Shown piece by piece: positions 5,664 to 63,933 of a DNA stretch of 64,000 nucleotides (positions are counted from its first letter, which is position 1; every line of letters begins with the position of its first letter). The notes beneath the pieces are model-generated. The model had not been told where the DNA came from. It ran no database searches and was given only the letters and a program-made list of their open reading frames with translations. Location: sequence record PV593634.1, one strand, 5' to 3'. Both the position numbers and the translations under genes were made by a program.

Positions 5664-5691
5664 CAGACACATATAATTTAAGTGTAAATAC
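5664..5691 (+). promoter_or_regulatory. putative early promoter
   Basis: CAGACACATATAATTTAAGTGTAAATAC, near-identical to 12620..12647. Confidence 0.65.
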
Positions 5692-8778: not shown

Positions 8779-8898
8779 ATGGATTTATTTTCGCAATTTG
8801 CATTGTGGTGTTTAGGCGCTATTGCTACTGGTTTTGTTTGTACTCTCTTTACACGTGGTTTAACCTATTTGAAAAACAAACTGTTTAAAAAATCTTAA
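8779..8898 (+). CDS. 39-aa single-TM microprotein absent from ORF track
   Basis: TAGGAG SD; MDLFSQFALWCLGAIATGFVCTLFTRGLTYLKNKLFKKS. Confidence 0.75.
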   Translation: MDLFSQFALWCLGAIATGFVCTLFTRGLTYLKNKLFKKS

Positions 8899-8917
8899 AC
8901 AGATATTATTAAAGTGT
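8899..8917 (+). promoter_or_regulatory. putative early promoter motif
   Basis: ACAGATATTATTAAAGTGT, 19-nt identity with 1761. Confidence 0.65.
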
Positions 8918-12619: not shown

Positions 12620-12647
12620 CAGACCTATATCATCTAAGTGTAAATAC
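12620..12647 (+). promoter_or_regulatory. putative early promoter
   Basis: CAGACCTATATCATCTAAGTGTAAATAC, near-identical to 5664. Confidence 0.65.
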
Positions 12648-14037: not shown

Positions 14038-14051
14038 CCATTTGAAAATGG

Positions 14052-14071
14052 ATAGATATTATCTATGTGTA
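14052..14071 (+). promoter_or_regulatory. putative early promoter motif
   Basis: ATAGATATTATCTATGTGTA. Confidence 0.55.
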
Positions 14072-28978: not shown

Positions 28979-29017
28979 AACTGGCTTCCTTATTCTTTAG
29001 TAACTATTAAATTATAG

Positions 29018-29037
29018 ACAGATATTATCAAAGTAGA
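29018..29037 (+). promoter_or_regulatory. putative early promoter motif
   Basis: ACAGATATTATCAAAGTAGA. Confidence 0.55.
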
Positions 29038-55411: not shown

Positions 55412-55438
55412 CAGGAATATATTATCGTAGTGTGAAAC
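55412..55438 (+). promoter_or_regulatory. putative early promoter motif
   Basis: CAGGAATATATTATCGTAGTGTGAAAC. Confidence 0.5.
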
Positions 55439-58816: not shown

Positions 58817-59170
58817 ATGACCGAGCAAGAACAAAAGACCTTTAATGAAAACCTGAACACTTTACGTCATCGTGTTCATATACTAGCTAAAGCTAAACGT
58901 CCTTTGGAAAATCTGTGGCCGAAGATTGATGACGAGTTTAAACGACTGGCTAATGCATTGGAGAACGAGAAAGGTTCTTCTAAGTCATATCGTTTACTGT
59001 TGGTCAACTTTGATACCATGAAAAATGGTTGGGTGACAGTATCGGCTAAAGACGGGTTTACTATCCGTCTGTGGATGATGAAGAAAGCAGCGTTCCGTTC
59101 TTGGGTTAACCTGGATCCGGAATCTAAAAATCATCGGACCCGTACATTTACCCGTAACCAAAAAGGTTAA
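58817..59170 (+). CDS. hypothetical protein
   Basis: 117-aa ORF in coupled operon. Confidence 0.8.
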   Translation: MTEQEQKTFNENLNTLRHRVHILAKAKRPLENLWPKIDDEFKRLANALENEKGSSKSYRLLLVNFDTMKNGWVTVSAKDGFTIRLWMMKKAAFRSWVNLDPESKNHRTRTFTRNQKG

Positions 59171-59173
59171 TCA

Positions 59174-59776
59174 ATGGCGTGGCTAAAACGCACACATAAA
59201 AGGGATTGGTTACAACGCACTCCCTATTTAAATGCCGTAGGGTTTACTCACGAGCTAAGTAACCAGACTCGTTGGGAAGTTAAACCTGAGTCCATGGACA
59301 AAGATCCAAACAAGATGACTTGGGCTGACGACTATTATCCTTACGAAGAGATAGTCGCTACGTTTGAGTTATTCTTTTCGATTGGATCTGAAATGATTAA
59401 GCTGCATGCTAATGACTTTATCGGTCCTAACGATGCGCTTAAGGACTATGTTCGTAAACTTGTTTTAATCCGCGATAACATACAAGCGTTTATACGCGAT
59501 TATAAGCCGTTCTTTGAAAAGGACAAGCCATTTATCATCAAGGAGTTCTTGAACGGCTCTGAGGGGCCCTCAGCGATCTATACGAGCACTGTGGCTATCT
59601 CTTGTTCTACAACTCATAACTTCTTCTTTGAAATTGCTTCTTGTGATGATAAAGCAAGAATGTACTTCGATAAGGAGAAAGACTTCTTAGAGATGTTGAT
59701 CAAGCTTCAGAAGTTCATGACATCGGCAATCACTGACGCCAAGACTACCATGGATACTTATAAGGGTAGGCTTTAG
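59174..59776 (+). CDS. paralog family member C
   Basis: FFSIGSEMIKLH, DYVRKLVLI, IKEFLN, FEIASCDDKAR. Confidence 0.85.
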   Translation: MAWLKRTHKRDWLQRTPYLNAVGFTHELSNQTRWEVKPESMDKDPNKMTWADDYYPYEEIVATFELFFSIGSEMIKLHANDFIGPNDALKDYVRKLVLIRDNIQAFIRDYKPFFEKDKPFIIKEFLNGSEGPSAIYTSTVAISCSTTHNFFFEIASCDDKARMYFDKEKDFLEMLIKLQKFMTSAITDAKTTMDTYKGRL

Positions 59777-59788
59777 TTGGATGAAATC

Positions 59789-59819
59789 TTAGGTATACAT
59801 TATCTACATGTATACCTAA
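59789..59819. promoter_or_regulatory. 11-bp inverted repeat overlapping promoter-like motif
   Basis: TTAGGTATACA-TTATCTACA-TGTATACCTAA. Confidence 0.55.
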
Positions 59820-59843: not shown

Positions 59844-60338
59844 ATGAATCGTTTTATCGTTAAAGTTCTGTTAGCTGTAGCCCTGGTTGGTTTCGCATTT
59901 ACTGTTGAAGCTAAAGGCTGGGTTCTGGATGCAGATACCCCAGAATACATGTCGATCTCCAACAAAGGAGATCTGGGCGGTGTGTTAGTATTGGCCTGTG
60001 AAAAGAAAACCGGTGAAGCTAACTTGTACTACGCCAAAGGCGGAACAGCTCTGGATTTCTTTATGGTGCGTAATTTCGGTGACACAACTGAAAACCATCG
60101 TACTAAGCTGATTATCGGTTCTGGTCTGAATAGCCAACAGGATATTTATTATCAGATCCTCCGTAACAACGAAGGGTTCACCGTTCATGGTTATGAACTG
60201 GGATCACAAAAAGAATGGCAAGATGCCGTAGCACATGGTCGCGAGCCAAATCTTAAAATGGTGATCACCGAATCTTTCCTGGCTAGTGAGACTGTTCAAA
60301 TTCTCATTACTCAAATGTCTCGTAGCTGCAAATTCTAA
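59844..60338 (+). CDS. exported two-Cys protein 1
   Basis: Sec signal peptide (..TVEA-K); LVLAC and C-terminal SRSCKF. Confidence 0.85.
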   Translation: MNRFIVKVLLAVALVGFAFTVEAKGWVLDADTPEYMSISNKGDLGGVLVLACEKKTGEANLYYAKGGTALDFFMVRNFGDTTENHRTKLIIGSGLNSQQDIYYQILRNNEGFTVHGYELGSQKEWQDAVAHGREPNLKMVITESFLASETVQILITQMSRSCKF

Positions 60339-60364
60339 TTCAACTTTAAAGAGAGAACTTAATC

Positions 60365-60985
60365 ATGACTCTGTCACCTTTCACTATCTTCATCTGGTTG
60401 TTCCTGGTATTCGGTGGACTGTTCGGTCTGAGCAATGCTGATGCTGCGTCTTACGACATCAAAGAGATTCCAGAGCCTAGCTTTGTAATCGCTGAGCGTA
60501 TCAGTGTTGGTACGGATAAAGTAATGAACGATATTACTGACGTAACCATTTCCACTAATGCGGGTGGTAATACACAACGCTTTATATTCCAGTGTGATAA
60601 GACTACTGAGTCTTTGAACATCTTTTACAACATCAAAGACACTACGGGCTACAAGGCTCGTGGTGCGACTGGAATGGCTATTACTGTATATCGCGGTAAC
60701 GAAACCAATTACAAACAAAACGGTATTGGATCCATATTCCAAACCGAAGAACAAGGACGCAATTTCTTAACCGCTTTACAAAGCGCAGCAGAAGCAGCAG
60801 GCAAAGGCATTATCGTATTTGAGTTCTACGAGTTATTGACCGATGGGACACGTTCAACTATCGCATACTCTCAGGGTATCAAGACTGAAGAGTTTGTTCG
60901 TATTGTTAACGCTATCGATAAAGTGCAAGGCAAAGAAGTCTGCAACATCGATAGTGGTTTCGCTCATTTAGCAACTTTGAAATAA
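60365..60985 (+). CDS. exported two-Cys protein 2
   Basis: signal peptide (..NADA-A); FIFQC and KEVC. Confidence 0.85.
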   Translation: MTLSPFTIFIWLFLVFGGLFGLSNADAASYDIKEIPEPSFVIAERISVGTDKVMNDITDVTISTNAGGNTQRFIFQCDKTTESLNIFYNIKDTTGYKARGATGMAITVYRGNETNYKQNGIGSIFQTEEQGRNFLTALQSAAEAAGKGIIVFEFYELLTDGTRSTIAYSQGIKTEEFVRIVNAIDKVQGKEVCNIDSGFAHLATLK

Positions 60986-60995
60986 GGACTTAGAA

Positions 60996-61472
60996 ATGAA
61001 AGCTTTTATCATCGCAGTACTGTTAGTTATCGCAATGCCTCTGCAAGCTAAGATCAATCCGAAGGATGACGTGGTTCAGTTCATGCCTATGGCTAATGGT
61101 AGTTATGCGTTCTCACTGCGTTGTGTAGCTCCAGGTAAGAGCAAAGCTTACGGTTGGGAGATTCTTCCTGGGTCTGGTAATAAAGATTCCCTTTCTGAAA
61201 TGAAACTGTTCTTTGGTGTCTACTTCAAAGGACAGGGTTTCCCTCAGGTATGGCAAGAAGTTAAACCAGCTATGAAGCATATGACCAGTCTGGTTAATAA
61301 TGCCGATATCTTAGTTGGCCCTAAAGCTAAAGGTAACATGATGGTATTCGGTATTGGTCGCAATGCTGAAGAAGCCAAGAAGAATCATGTTACAATCAAA
61401 CCAGGTAGTGATCTTAGTCGTTATCGTGATGTAGTATTTGGATATCATGATTGTTCTAAGATCGTTAAGTAA
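60996..61472 (+). CDS. exported two-Cys protein 3
   Basis: signal peptide (..PLQA-K); FSLRC and YHDC. Confidence 0.85.
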   Translation: MKAFIIAVLLVIAMPLQAKINPKDDVVQFMPMANGSYAFSLRCVAPGKSKAYGWEILPGSGNKDSLSEMKLFFGVYFKGQGFPQVWQEVKPAMKHMTSLVNNADILVGPKAKGNMMVFGIGRNAEEAKKNHVTIKPGSDLSRYRDVVFGYHDCSKIVK

Positions 61473-61517
61473 TTTATTTAAATTAGCCTAATCGGCTGAA
61501 CCCCCTACCCCCAATAT

Positions 61518-62270
61518 ATGAAGGAAATAGTAATGAAAAACATTATCGCTAAAGCAATGGCTGTTGTAGTTATGTCTCTGGCTCTGGTAGCTTGTAAAGA
61601 AGATAAGAACACTATCGACATGACCGATCCGAAGTACGGTGTGAACGTGGCTGAAGTGAAAGAAGAGATGTACGGTCCTGTTATCTCTCAGCCAGGCGTA
61701 GCTGTTAAACCTAAGATCGCTCGTGGTACTATGGGCGATGGTATCAGCATGGTCATGATTGCTTCCCGCAATCCTAAACCTCAGGTTATCACGGTTATGT
61801 GTGAAGCTCGTACCAAACTGTGGGGCATCGGTCATACAGTGGATAACATGAACGGCATGGGTGGTGTCGGTTCTTACGATAAGAACGAAGATCCTACCTA
61901 TGCTGAAATGAGTATCTATAACTTCCGTAAAGGCACCACAGAGATCCGTGAGCAGGATGAATTCATCGAACCTATTATGTCCACGGCTAATGGTAACGGT
62001 GATATCTACGGCACTCTGAAGGCTCTGGATAAACTTGATCGTGAATCCGTTATTGCTTTCGCGTTCGAACTCCCGGATGCAGAAGGTAAAGCCTATGTTC
62101 ACGGTTGGTCTCAGTTATACAAAGTTGGTGATCTCGTAGACGGTCTGAAGAAACTGGATCTGTCCGACTGTGCGGGTACTCGTATGGAATCCGAAGTTCC
62201 TGAAATTCATTATACTCCGGTATCTGAAATGATGGAAGCGGCTCGTGCTATGCAAGAACGTACTAAATAA
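61518..62270 (+). CDS. lipoprotein, two-Cys family member 4
   Basis: lipobox LVA-C; ITVMC and LSDC. Confidence 0.85.
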   Translation: MKEIVMKNIIAKAMAVVVMSLALVACKEDKNTIDMTDPKYGVNVAEVKEEMYGPVISQPGVAVKPKIARGTMGDGISMVMIASRNPKPQVITVMCEARTKLWGIGHTVDNMNGMGGVGSYDKNEDPTYAEMSIYNFRKGTTEIREQDEFIEPIMSTANGNGDIYGTLKALDKLDRESVIAFAFELPDAEGKAYVHGWSQLYKVGDLVDGLKKLDLSDCAGTRMESEVPEIHYTPVSEMMEAARAMQERTK

Positions 62271-62275
62271 CTAAG

Positions 62276-62294
62276 TGGGGACTTTTGGTCCCCA
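62276..62294 (+). terminator. hairpin
   Basis: TGGGGAC-TTTTG-GTCCCCA. Confidence 0.6.
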
Positions 62295-62373
62295 TTCATT
62301 TATACTAATATTTTTTGTCATCAAGACAGCTATTATTAGTATAAACGAAAACAACACGCAAGAGGATGAGTAT

Positions 62374-63081
62374 ATGAAATGCGAAGCTTTGACTGAAGAG
62401 GAAGCCAAAGTTCAGGCAGACAAGGATTGGGCTCAGTTGTTCGGATACAAAATGCAGAAAGATCTGCTGCGTTATTGTGTTTGGTCTATCTCCCTTAACG
62501 ACGTCGCTCATAACCTGGGCCATGTTTGGGATGTTTGTAAGCTGGGCATTAGCATGGCTGAACAACTGGAACTAAACGAACGAGATACGATGCTGGTAAA
62601 CCTAGGTTGTTTACTCCACGACATAGGTTGTCGCTATGAACGTAAGCATCATCATTTGATAGGATATGGGCTAGTCTATGAACTCATTGGGCGTTACTGT
62701 CCAGGGATGTTTACGGATGAAGAACTATTGACTGTCGCGACCGCGGTACTCGAACACCGTAGTAGTAATCCGAATAAGCCTACAAATTTAATCAGTAGCA
62801 TTGTCAGTGTTGCTGATTCGGGAACACCAGATTTCGATAAGTATATCCGACGTGCTGTTCAGTTCCGTATGAAGAACAACCATCCACCGGAAACCTTAGT
62901 CGAAGATACCTACAAGCACCTATTGGAAAAGTTTGGTGTTGAAGGTTATCACTGGAAGAGTTATCCTGATGTTGGTATGACTTTATTTAAGTTCGAGTGG
63001 GAACTGTTTACCGAATTACTCTACGATGACAAACATACACTGTCTCGTATAAAGGAGACATACGTTTCACTTGGAGGTTAG
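62374..63081 (+). CDS. HD-domain phosphohydrolase (track start 62275)
   Basis: AHNLGH, LLHDIG, HHLIG, VLEHRS, VADS; GAGGA SD before ATG 62374. Confidence 0.88.
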   Translation: MKCEALTEEEAKVQADKDWAQLFGYKMQKDLLRYCVWSISLNDVAHNLGHVWDVCKLGISMAEQLELNERDTMLVNLGCLLHDIGCRYERKHHHLIGYGLVYELIGRYCPGMFTDEELLTVATAVLEHRSSNPNKPTNLISSIVSVADSGTPDFDKYIRRAVQFRMKNNHPPETLVEDTYKHLLEKFGVEGYHWKSYPDVGMTLFKFEWELFTELLYDDKHTLSRIKETYVSLGG

Positions 63082-63541
63082 GGTGGACATTACGTTATTC
63101 AATGTCGTACTAACTGGCGGGTTAATGTGTGTTATATTCCTTATTATGTTTGGCGGGATATGGTGGCTTATTCACGATCAACCAATTAACGAGGAACGAT
63201 TTAGTTGGCATCAACTGGTTAAGAATAGTTTCCATGTCTCGATCATTGATAAGGACGGTAAATCTCACACCGCTGACATACACTATAACGTTAAAACCAA
63301 CAAAGCCACATGCCGTACTAAGAAAGAAAGAAGGTTACAAATCTATCTACCGGAAGGGTTCACCAGAAAAGAGTTCTTTGACTTTGCTGGTGGGCTTAAC
63401 GATATAGACGGAACTCTTAGGGCGGTTATTCGAAGCGTTAAAGAGGAAAAGCTTATTGAGGAATTTGGTTTCTCTAAAGCTGATGTTTCTACTTATCGAG
63501 AGTTTAAACGTTACCTCTTATTAAAGGCTCTTAGATCATGA
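63071..63541 (+). CDS. N-terminally anchored membrane protein
   Basis: single N-terminal TM. Confidence 0.7.
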   Translation: MEVRVDITLFNVVLTGGLMCVIFLIMFGGIWWLIHDQPINEERFSWHQLVKNSFHVSIIDKDGKSHTADIHYNVKTNKATCRTKKERRLQIYLPEGFTRKEFFDFAGGLNDIDGTLRAVIRSVKEEKLIEEFGFSKADVSTYREFKRYLLLKALRS

Positions 63542-63933
63542 ACTTTGCTATGTTCGTCGTTATCTTTATTCTTGCTATCTACTTAGGTATGATGATCTTG
63601 AATGTTGATACCGGCAAAATAACGTCTGAGTTTGTTGCAGGTAGTTTGGTGATTAAATATCGTGGAGAGCGCATAATCTTTACTAAGCACTTTGATCTTG
63701 AAGAGATCATGTTCTTTGATGATGGTTATGTTGAGAAAGTCTCGTTACCTAGAAAGGGTGTTAAGGAAGACGTTTACAAATACTTCAAGGATAATGAGAA
63801 AGCCTCCGATACACTACAACTACTCACTAACTGGAAAGCTGGCGATTGCGCATTTGTGAGATTCGACCCACTATGTGCTAAAGGTCTGATAGCAGCTCAG
63901 ATCAAGTTATCCGTGTTCTGTGAAAAAGATTAA
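63538..63933 (+). CDS. N-terminally anchored membrane protein
   Basis: single N-terminal TM; ATGA overlap. Confidence 0.75.
   Translation: MNFAMFVVIFILAIYLGMMILNVDTGKITSEFVAGSLVIKYRGERIIFTKHFDLEEIMFFDDGYVEKVSLPRKGVKEDVYKYFKDNEKASDTLQLLTNWKAGDCAFVRFDPLCAKGLIAAQIKLSVFCEKD

Follow-up and report, generated by a model that had tools for sequence, protein, structure and literature searches.

What do four small exported proteins, encoded side by side in the genome of a jumbo phage, do in the envelope of the infected cell? The question is raised by positions 59844-62270 of a 64,000-nucleotide stretch of sequence record PV593634.1 (the whole of which is referred to here as the window), where an original prediction made from the sequence alone had placed an operon of four exported paralogs, termed p1 to p4 below and collectively the array. 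The 2427 bases concerned are 100% identical to Shewanella phage SXP01 (PV593634.1), which has a genome of 269,939 bp and S. xiamenensis as its host. All four open reading frames (ORFs) were present as described, forming a compact array on the plus strand with gaps of 26, 10, and 60 nucleotides (nt) between genes, and the cysteine-containing peptides quoted for them (LVLACEKKT, FIFQCDKTT, FSLRCVAPG, and ITVMCEART; RSCKF, EVCN, HDCS, and SDCA) were all found within these ORFs. The genome shows no sign of an alternative genetic code. The architecture that had been proposed, a diversified module of exported proteins with two conserved cysteines, proved right in that both export signals and a conserved cysteine pair were found. 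Our tentatively preferred answer to the question, at less than an even chance, is that the array products act as early periplasmic binding modules that would alter the host envelope, for example in superinfection exclusion.

Export Signals and a Conserved Cysteine Pair

Signal peptides were judged by sequence inspection and a Kyte-Doolittle hydropathy scan rather than with a dedicated predictor, the criterion being an N-terminal n-h-c signal with an A-X-A-type site or a lipobox of the form [LVI][ASTVI][GAS]C. On inspection, Sec signal peptides were found in p1, p2, and p3, with cleavage sites between VEA and Lys, ADA and Ala, and LQA and Lys, respectively, and the lipobox LVAC was found in p4, in agreement with the three Sec-signal proteins and one lipoprotein that had been predicted. 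The Kyte-Doolittle maximum over 12 residues reached 2.6-3.3 within the first 35 residues of each of the four proteins. A hydrophobic N terminus was present in 9 of the 67 window ORFs of at least 90 amino acids (aa), four of the nine being array genes and two lying just downstream. The export signals are conserved across orthologs, and the motif ASYDIKE is conserved at the mature N terminus of p2. We infer that p1, p2, and p3 are soluble periplasmic proteins and that p4 is lipid-anchored and tethered to a membrane.

The relatives of p4 (subfamily G4, below) give a hint as to which membrane this might be. A lipobox is present in 34 of 57 non-identical G4 members, with Asp at position +2 in 14, Lys in 9, and Asn in 6, and the remaining members have a plain N-terminal anchor that looks uncleaved. 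Under the enterobacterial sorting rule, a lipoprotein with Asp at +2 is kept in the inner membrane. Since many counterparts of p4 carry either Asp at +2 or a plain anchor, the likely location would be the inner membrane, on its periplasmic face.

Mature p1, p2, p3, and p4 each contain exactly two cysteines, spaced by 110, 116, 110, and 123 residues. Exactly two cysteines per protein is not rare in itself; what goes beyond chance is that the spacing is common to the four proteins and that it is conserved. Exactly two mature cysteines were counted in 34/34 G1, 37/38 G2, 26/26 G3, 53/59 G4, and 9/9 G5 proteins, with a median spacing of 112-116 residues, and both cysteines form invariant columns (essentially so across ∼160 relatives) in alignments at 17-35% identity. 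In the structure models of p1 and p4 described below, the first cysteine lies at the end of the third strand of an N-terminal β meander and the second directly after the last core helix. The predicted arrangement, one cysteine in a hydrophobic strand and one after the last helix, was recovered in both models. An invariant cysteine pair in an oxidizing compartment points to a structural disulfide, presumably formed by the host DsbA system.

A Fixed Locus in Jumbo Phages

Searches with tblastn returned relatives of p1 in 29 phage records and of p4 in 21, all of them jumbo phages, infecting Pseudomonas, Klebsiella, Serratia, Edwardsiella, Erwinia, Kosakonia, Pantoea, and Aeromonas. The array was found at the same position in 10 isolated phages and 12 metagenomic loci, where the gene order is a gene for a protein of ∼200 residues (in most), three to five genes for exported two-cysteine proteins, and an HD phosphohydrolase gene. 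In all 22 loci the array precedes the HD-domain gene and the tail tube and sheath genes, which are of the phiKZ type and adjoin the locus on the opposite strand. Jumbo phages of the OBP/pEt-SU/N1M2/AH04/D3 type thus carry the array as a constant element. The Pfam families phiKZ_gp29PR, Phage_TTP_14, and Peptidase_S80 were matched at related loci, corresponding to tail sheath, tail tube, and prohead protease genes; because these are of the phiKZ type, SXP01 is placed among the phiKZ-like, nucleus-forming jumbo phages.

When ∼160 array proteins were pooled, they fell into five main subfamilies, G1-G5. The SXP01 proteins p1-p4 belong to G1-G4, and SXP01 lacks a G5 member; a sixth group, G6, has two members, from Aeromonas phage D3 and one metagenomic locus. 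Both the copy number, from three to five, and the subfamily content vary between phages, and in the loci examined the last member of the array is usually a lipoprotein or membrane-anchored.

The third gene, p3, has no coding sequence feature in PV593634.1, in which the annotation goes straight from the p2 gene to the p4 gene. An ortholog (OBP_304) and 15 further relatives of p3 were found. Substitutions listed in related strains fell at codon position 3 in nine of nine cases for p3 and in 26 of 31 for p4, a predominance that indicates purifying selection on the array. Given the orthologs and the third-position substitutions, p3 is, on sequence evidence, a real and conserved gene under purifying selection despite the missing annotation, so that the GenBank annotation of SXP01 lacks one of the four array genes. 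The genes p3 and p4 lie in one common reading frame with a stop codon between them. For p4, an alternative start at 61518 would give a protein of 250 aa; the start given in Table 1 is the better one, because it is preceded by an AAGGA ribosome-binding site and coincides with the start in GenBank and in the orthologs.

An exhaustive profile search, in which an alignment of G2, G4, and G5 was compared with 1.84 billion representatives at an expectation value (E) of 0.001 or better, yielded only 75 matches. Approximately 60 of these are short proteins that keep the signal peptide, the full-length ones keeping the cysteine pair as well, and three divergent matches that were traced all lie at the same locus. 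No cellular homolog was seen in this search. The other ∼15 matches were giant immunoglobulin-repeat surface proteins (857-5949 aa; DUF7933, Cadherin_5, and Big_9), each matched over several short stretches, and were judged to be repeat artifacts. A scan of IMG/VR with p1 returned no relatives. Searches of p1-p4 against Pfam (E up to 1) and PHROGs gave no family match, and no PHROG with an annotated function was hit at E < 0.05; Pfam was likewise unmatched by 25 family members (E up to 10). A sequence-profile search of the PDB with the alignment of the same 25 members gave no match, with neither 3dtd nor MotY being found. All relatives of the array proteins are annotated as hypothetical, and a 2026 review of jumbo phages makes no mention of periplasm, signal peptides, lipoproteins, spanins, or superinfection, all of which sits well with the earlier suggestion that the system was plausibly undescribed. 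The array defines a small superfamily without annotation, amounting to ∼60 clusters among the 1.84 billion representatives and occupying a fixed locus.

Kinship of the Four Proteins and Their Predicted Fold

Pairwise BLAST revealed no similarity among p1-p4. Comparison of family profiles was more informative for p2 and p4, whose families were matched by hhalign with a probability of 98.5% and an E of 3e-15 over 189 columns; the G4 hidden Markov model (HMM) also matched p2 at E 4e-17. Subfamilies G2, G4, and G5 were linked by hhalign at 94-98.5% and, at the level of profiles, are clearly homologous. Between G1 and the other subfamilies, hhalign gave only 15-29%, and reciprocal HMM links to G2, G4, and G5 were weak, the best being that of the G4 HMM to OBP gp302 (E 8e-5 in a set of 116 sequences). 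No significant profile link from G3, the subfamily of p3, to any other subfamily was obtained in the hhalign and HMM comparisons.

AlphaFold2 models were made of p1 (predicted local distance difference test score, pLDDT, 90.2; predicted template modeling score, pTM, 0.83) and p4 (pLDDT 90.3; pTM 0.85). Both are globular domains rich in β-strands and containing helices. A Foldseek search of the PDB returned nothing significant for either model (E 0.012 or worse). Each model was also aligned structurally with 48,161 representative chains, after which a second-look run was performed. In the first run, the flagellar protein MotY (8z5n) was the top match for p1 (Z 6.5) and p4 (Z 5.1), and IalB (3dtd) was second for p1 (Z 6.4) and third for p4 (Z 3.1). 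In the second look, the p1 model matched MotY 8z5n (Z 7.4), MotY 2zf8 (Z 6.9), and IalB 3dtd (Z 6.7), the next row being at 3.9, and the p4 model matched the same three entries in the same order (Z 5.1, 4.7, and 3.4), the next row being at 2.7, so that for both models these entries stood clearly above the rest.

The MotY alignments covered 120 aa with a root mean square deviation (rmsd) of 4.4 (Z 7.4) and 123 aa (Z 6.9) for p1, and 129 aa (Z 5.1) and 132 aa (Z 4.7) for p4, with an overall rmsd of 4.4-5.4 Å and identities of 7-9%. They spanned the N-terminal domain of MotY (MotY-N) whole, residues 1-140 of p1 being aligned with MotY residues 13-149 and residues 29-194 of p4 with MotY residues 1-150. 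The alignments of p1 with IalB covered 113-114 residues (Z 6.4-6.7). A resemblance to IalB had been part of the original prediction; a real, if weak, structural signal of this kind is present, the score for p4 being especially low (Z 3.1-3.4), and MotY-N is the better match for both. Modest Z values alone would not prove kinship; that two families without significant sequence similarity choose the same rare PDB fold is informative, as far as models go. Comparison of models had been proposed from the outset as a check on whether the folds are related, and those of p1 and p4 share a fold. The p1/p4 domain is best described, on the strength of these models, as a stand-alone, distant structural relative of MotY-N and IalB.

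A search of BFVD with the p1 model recovered G1 orthologs at a TM score of ∼0.8 as well as proteins that by length and source fit G5, G2, G6, and G4, with probabilities of 0.84-1.0. We take p1, p2, and p4 to be copies of a single domain that have diverged, p2 and p4 being joined by profiles and p1 by structure. The same search also returned small uncharacterized proteins of T4-like and other large myoviruses (probability 0.51-1.0; TM 0.45-0.57). Among these were Vibrio phage VP4B V9LZ94, Serratia phage Yaphecito A0A7T3NC48 (annotated as “putative adhesin”), and Escherichia phage RB16 D9IC73, at probabilities of 0.96-1.0, and Klebsiella phage KP15 D5JF58. These proteins resemble p1 in being phage-encoded, of similar size, and of the same predicted fold, with an identity of ∼10%, and the p1 fold may occur in many large phages, in families that differ in sequence.

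The place of p3 is less certain, and the claim of four paralogs holds for three of the proteins, no link to p3 having been shown. It is conceivable that p3, and possibly other members, are unrelated secreted ORFans that acquired the cysteine pair by convergence, so that the four genes do not constitute one functional family. The absence of pairwise BLAST similarity and of a profile link for p3 would fit, as would the noise-level scores (0.81) of an Atlas search with p3 and the lack of an obvious p3-type (G3) protein in the BFVD list for p1. Against this stand the homology of p2 and p4, the common fold of p1 and p4, and the properties that p3 shares with the other members, namely its size, its cysteine spacing of 110, a first cysteine in a hydrophobic strand, a second near the C terminus, and its locus. 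Profile alignments also set both cysteines of p3 in register with those of the others, a register partly forced by the high weight of invariant cysteines, and a Chou-Fasman-type profile of the p3 family gave the same order of elements after the first cysteine as in p1, which is a hint only given that the three-state accuracy (Q3) of the method was 0.60-0.68 on two controls, p1 and p4. Because of its size, cysteine geometry, locus, and crude secondary-structure profile, p3 probably has the fold of p1, p2, and p4, and we consider convergence of unrelated proteins unlikely.

Relationship to MotY and IalB

MotY-N, known from the T-ring of the Vibrio polar flagellar motor (2zf8 and 8z5n), is, like the array proteins, periplasmic and exported by the Sec pathway. 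The two differ in that MotY possesses an OmpA-like peptidoglycan-binding domain, whereas the array consists of three to five tandem paralogs carried by phages, including those of enterobacterial hosts; the secondary-structure order also differs in detail between p1 and p4. There is no room for an OmpA-like C-terminal domain in the phage proteins, p1-p3 ending 2-14 residues past the second cysteine and p4 adding only a strand and a helix, and no OmpA-type Pfam match was obtained. The HMM for MotY_N (PF18393) gave no match in p1-p4 (E up to 1), in 25 family members (E up to 10), or in the six-frame translation of the SXP01 record (E up to 10). IalB and IalB-domain proteins such as RgsG resemble the array proteins in being small and exported to the envelope, and IalB is the third-best solved match for both models. 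The IalB family is alphaproteobacterial and cellular, with no tandem arrays described, and its HMM (PF06776/COG5342) had no Pfam match in p1-p4 or the family members. Since every sequence-based test of MotY_N or IalB membership failed and no OmpA-like domain is present, the array proteins are best regarded, on the basis of the models, as a phage-specific, stand-alone variant of a MotY-N/IalB-like fold that belongs to neither family. MotY-N and IalB are both non-enzymatic periplasmic domains that bind other proteins, and the biochemical roles of the two folds are themselves poorly understood.

The structural match raises the possibility that the array proteins act as MotY-N decoys: by docking on MotX or the flagellar basal body they would disable or remodel the motor, for instance stopping motility or blocking flagellum-dependent phages. 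Among solved structures, MotY-N scored highest with both models and was matched across its entire domain; it is also the non-enzymatic part of MotY that binds MotX and the basal body (PMC9093738). An intramolecular disulfide is reported for MotY in the title of Yagasaki et al. (2006), and both Shewanella and Pseudomonas are reported to possess MotX and MotY (PMC11546298), which are also components of the Aeromonas polar-flagellum motor (PMC4960245). The same array is nevertheless found in phages of Klebsiella, Serratia, Edwardsiella, Erwinia, Kosakonia, and Pantoea. These enterobacterial hosts are not known to carry MotX or MotY. In E. coli and Salmonella, no T ring and no MotX or MotY homologs are present (PMC2885626). 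The low Z scores and identities, the lack of any MotY_N match in the genome or the family, and the fact that IalB matches p1 nearly as well as MotY does also speak against mimicry of MotY, which we regard as very improbable. The disulfide of MotY would join Cys25 to Cys147 and end the domain, as in the phage proteins.

The Array as a Transcription Unit

The array is preceded by a promoter-type motif with a single mismatch to the OBP/N1M2 consensus (Table 1). When the window was scanned with this motif (YARRYAKAYATTATYWWADTG, up to three mismatches), eight matches were found against 1.04 expected, a number reached in none of 100 shuffles, all of them on the plus strand. In seven cases the next ORF start follows at a distance of 32-61 nt; in the remaining case (1758-1778) an ORF with a GTG start follows after 10 nt. 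The eight sites offer a map of likely phage-polymerase transcription units in the window. The spacer containing the motif ahead of the p1 orthologs is strongly conserved in 11 phages. In N1M2, the motif has been listed before ORFs 239 and 240, the orthologs of p1 and p2, and before ORF 242, the HD gene (Supplementary Table 4 of PMC7058600), and the same paper reports that the OBP authors deemed the motif early. In SXP01 the motif falls within a perfect 9-base inverted repeat (GGTATACAT ... ATGTATACC), and matching inverted repeats made of other bases are present in N1M2 and OBP (GGTCTATA/TATAGACC and GGGTATACA/TGTATACCC); the promoter motif may be overlapped by a hairpin or by the binding site of a dimer.

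Downstream, a terminator-like hairpin directly follows the p4 stop codon, and no terminator-like site was found within 59844-62270. Short contigs from two RNA libraries cover part of p1 (59927-60149) and the p2/p3 junction (60871-61035). The operon originally predicted is borne out by the motif, the short intergenic gaps, the absence of an internal terminator-like site, and the hairpin, which together support a single discrete transcription unit made up of promoter-type motif, four genes, and hairpin. This unit is probably expressed early, as judged by its motif. Two other candidate signals were set aside: the motif MACTTTNAA before p1, p2, and p3 was not enriched (14 matches against 8.8 expected), and a σ70 promoter scan gave fewer sites than in shuffles and is irrelevant to a phage with its own polymerases.

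An exported unit of this kind might serve the timing or execution of lysis, by sensing or regulating holin and endolysin in the manner of the T4 RI antiholin or by replacing spanins. In its favor, all four proteins are exported, p4 is a lipoprotein, two small membrane-anchored proteins are encoded just downstream of the HD gene, and the literature searched contains no description of lysis genes in these phages. Against it, lysis genes tend to be expressed late, whereas this unit is headed by a motif predicted to be early. The modeled fold is globular and β-rich, unlike either a coiled-coil i-spanin or a short proline-rich o-spanin, the p4 lipoprotein is 245 aa long, and three to five diversified copies would not be expected of spanins. 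In addition, no PHROG lysis family, spanins included, was matched, and no endolysin was seen adjoining the array in any locus. We consider a role in lysis quite improbable.

Divergence and Possible Function

The array proteins are 24-42% identical to their relatives and 53-69% identical to those of the closest metagenomic relative. Among these relatives, the enterobacterial and Pseudomonas phages show identities of 60-84% for the product of the gene preceding the array and of 62-82% for the HD protein; the array has diverged two to three times faster than these neighboring genes. No conserved set of catalytic-looking residues was apparent in the alignments, the invariant positions being Gly, Trp, Tyr, Pro, Phe, and Cys with a single Asp or Glu. 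From the lack of catalytic-looking residues, the fast divergence, and the copy number of three to five, we infer host-specific binding modules, and the fast divergence, variable copy number, and predicted early promoter suggest that such modules are deployed early at the envelope. Superinfection exclusion, receptor masking, inhibition of lysozyme or lysis, and anti-defense were the candidate roles originally put forward. The early-type promoter, itself a prediction, and the fast divergence would fit an early role at the host interface better than a role in lysis.

The preferred reading can be set out as follows. The array products would leave the cytoplasm by the Sec pathway, p1-p3 remaining soluble in the periplasm and p4 becoming lipid-anchored, and each mature protein would form a compact domain of β-sheet and helices stapled by a DsbA-dependent disulfide. 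Tuned to host-specific components of the envelope, these binding modules would be made early in infection and would modify or occupy parts of the envelope. The most likely result would be that the entry of competing phages is blocked; alternatively, the envelope may be held in a state that suits the long cycle of a jumbo phage. Several superinfection-exclusion and envelope proteins of other phages, T4 Imm and Sp, T5 Llp, and φ80 Cor, are early, fast-evolving, and exported or lipid-anchored. The likeness of the array to these is by analogy only, since they are single genes rather than arrays of paralogs, and no homology to Imm, Sp, Llp, Cor, or SieA was found in PHROGs. The literature searched describes no exclusion system of this kind in nucleus-forming jumbo phages.

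The second possibility, that the modules serve envelope maintenance or anti-defense, shares much of this evidence. The proteins would bind trans-envelope or peptidoglycan-associated machines, such as Tol-Pal-type complexes, lytic enzymes, or sensors of stress and abortive infection, and keep the cell intact and silent, phage exclusion not being their purpose. Localization, predicted early timing, and fast, host-correlated divergence fit it as well as they fit binding modules for exclusion, from which the present data do not separate it. The periplasmic IalB-domain protein RgsG belongs to an essential set of polar-growth proteins interacting with Tol-Pal in Sinorhizobium (PMC7327166), a precedent that is weakened by the low IalB score of p4 (Z 3.4). 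This possibility is regarded as unlikely. In our ranking, superinfection exclusion or entry blocking would come first, envelope maintenance or anti-defense second, lysis third, and MotY mimicry fourth.

A number of observations weigh against early periplasmic binding modules, or at least against parts of that reading. No homolog or experiment assigns a function to the array proteins. At the locus of the closest metagenomic relative p1 is missing, and no clear p2 is present in phage Survivor; because subfamily content varies in this way, the members of the array need not act together. The signal peptides were assigned by eye only, and the n-region of p2 has no positive charge. The disulfide follows from conservation and compartment rather than being read from model coordinates. 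For p3, no significant profile link was obtained, and the BFVD list holds no obvious counterpart. The MotY matches are modest (Z 4.7-7.4), and the aligner itself cautions that scores below 8 may mean no more than a frequently seen arrangement. As for the motif, its “early” label has been predicted in the literature, and in N1M2 it also precedes some structural and lytic genes (PMC7058600). Finally, the RNA-library contigs could stem from DNA carry-over.

A bolder and rather doubtful extension of the same reading is that the array is an unrecognized early periplasmic system of diversified, DsbA-dependent decoys with a MotY-N/IalB fold, each binding a different host envelope machine (an entry route, a flagellar or pilus base, or an envelope sensor) and so shielding the infected cell from competing phages or from envelope-triggered defense. 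If this were true, the decoys would form, at the envelope, a counterpart to the nucleus by which these phages shield their DNA. Research on nucleus-forming jumbo phages has centered on the cytoplasm, with its shell, protein import, and RNA polymerases. The array is a conserved, fast-evolving, and probably early operon with all of its products directed to the envelope, and it offers a tractable entry point to the action of these phages at the cell surface.

Neighboring Features

The features discussed are collected in Table 1. The gene just upstream of the array encodes an unusually conserved protein, 60-84% identical to counterparts in OBP-, N1M2-, and pEt-SU-type phages, and is 600-609 nt long (mostly 600 or 603 nt) in most loci examined. 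No family could be assigned to this protein, phrog_25192 being matched only weakly (E 0.0012). In two related strains (public runs), 35 bases at 59137-59173, comprising the end of the gene at 58817-59170 and the spacer, are replaced by 82 others. On the downstream side, the longest HD phosphohydrolase ORF opens with a GTG that lies within the terminator hairpin, a start that adds a spurious hydrophobic N terminus; the real start is an ATG, as in GenBank.

Table 1. Features in and around the array, numbered from the first nucleotide of the window
Feature	Position	Strand	Description
Segment replaced in two related strains	59137-59173		
Gene upstream of array	59174-59776	+	200-residue protein
Promoter-type motif	59790..59810	+	TAGGTATACATTATCTACATG; 33 nt before p1 start; one mismatch to OBP/N1M2 consensus (PMC7058600 Table 2)
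Inverted repeat	59792-59816		perfect, 9-base
p1 (subfamily G1)	59844..60338	+	164 aa; Sec signal peptide, predicted cleavage after VEA23; Cys52/Cys162
p2 (subfamily G2)	60365..60985	+	206 aa; signal peptide, predicted cleavage after ADA27; Cys77/Cys193
p3 (subfamily G3)	60996..61472	+	158 aa; signal peptide, predicted cleavage after LQA18; Cys43/Cys153
p4 (subfamily G4)	61533..62270	+	245 aa; lipobox LVAC21, Lys at +2; core domain Cys90/Cys213; C-terminal helical extension
Terminator-like hairpin	62274..62296	+	directly after p4 stop; 10 pairs, 5 of them G-C, then T-rich tail
HD phosphohydrolase, longest ORF	62275-63081	+	real start at 62374
Small membrane-anchored protein	63071-63541	+	156 aa
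Small membrane-anchored protein	63538-63933	+	131 aa
OBP/N1M2-type motif sites	1758-1778, 5664-5684, 8896-8916, 12620-12640, 14049-14069, 29015-29035, 55412-55432, 59790-59810	+	up to three mismatches

The two small proteins encoded after the HD gene, each anchored in the membrane at its N terminus, gave no Pfam or PHROG match, and in most relatives proteins of similar size are encoded at this position. With these two and the array, the envelope-directed proteins of the window are concentrated within 4 kb.

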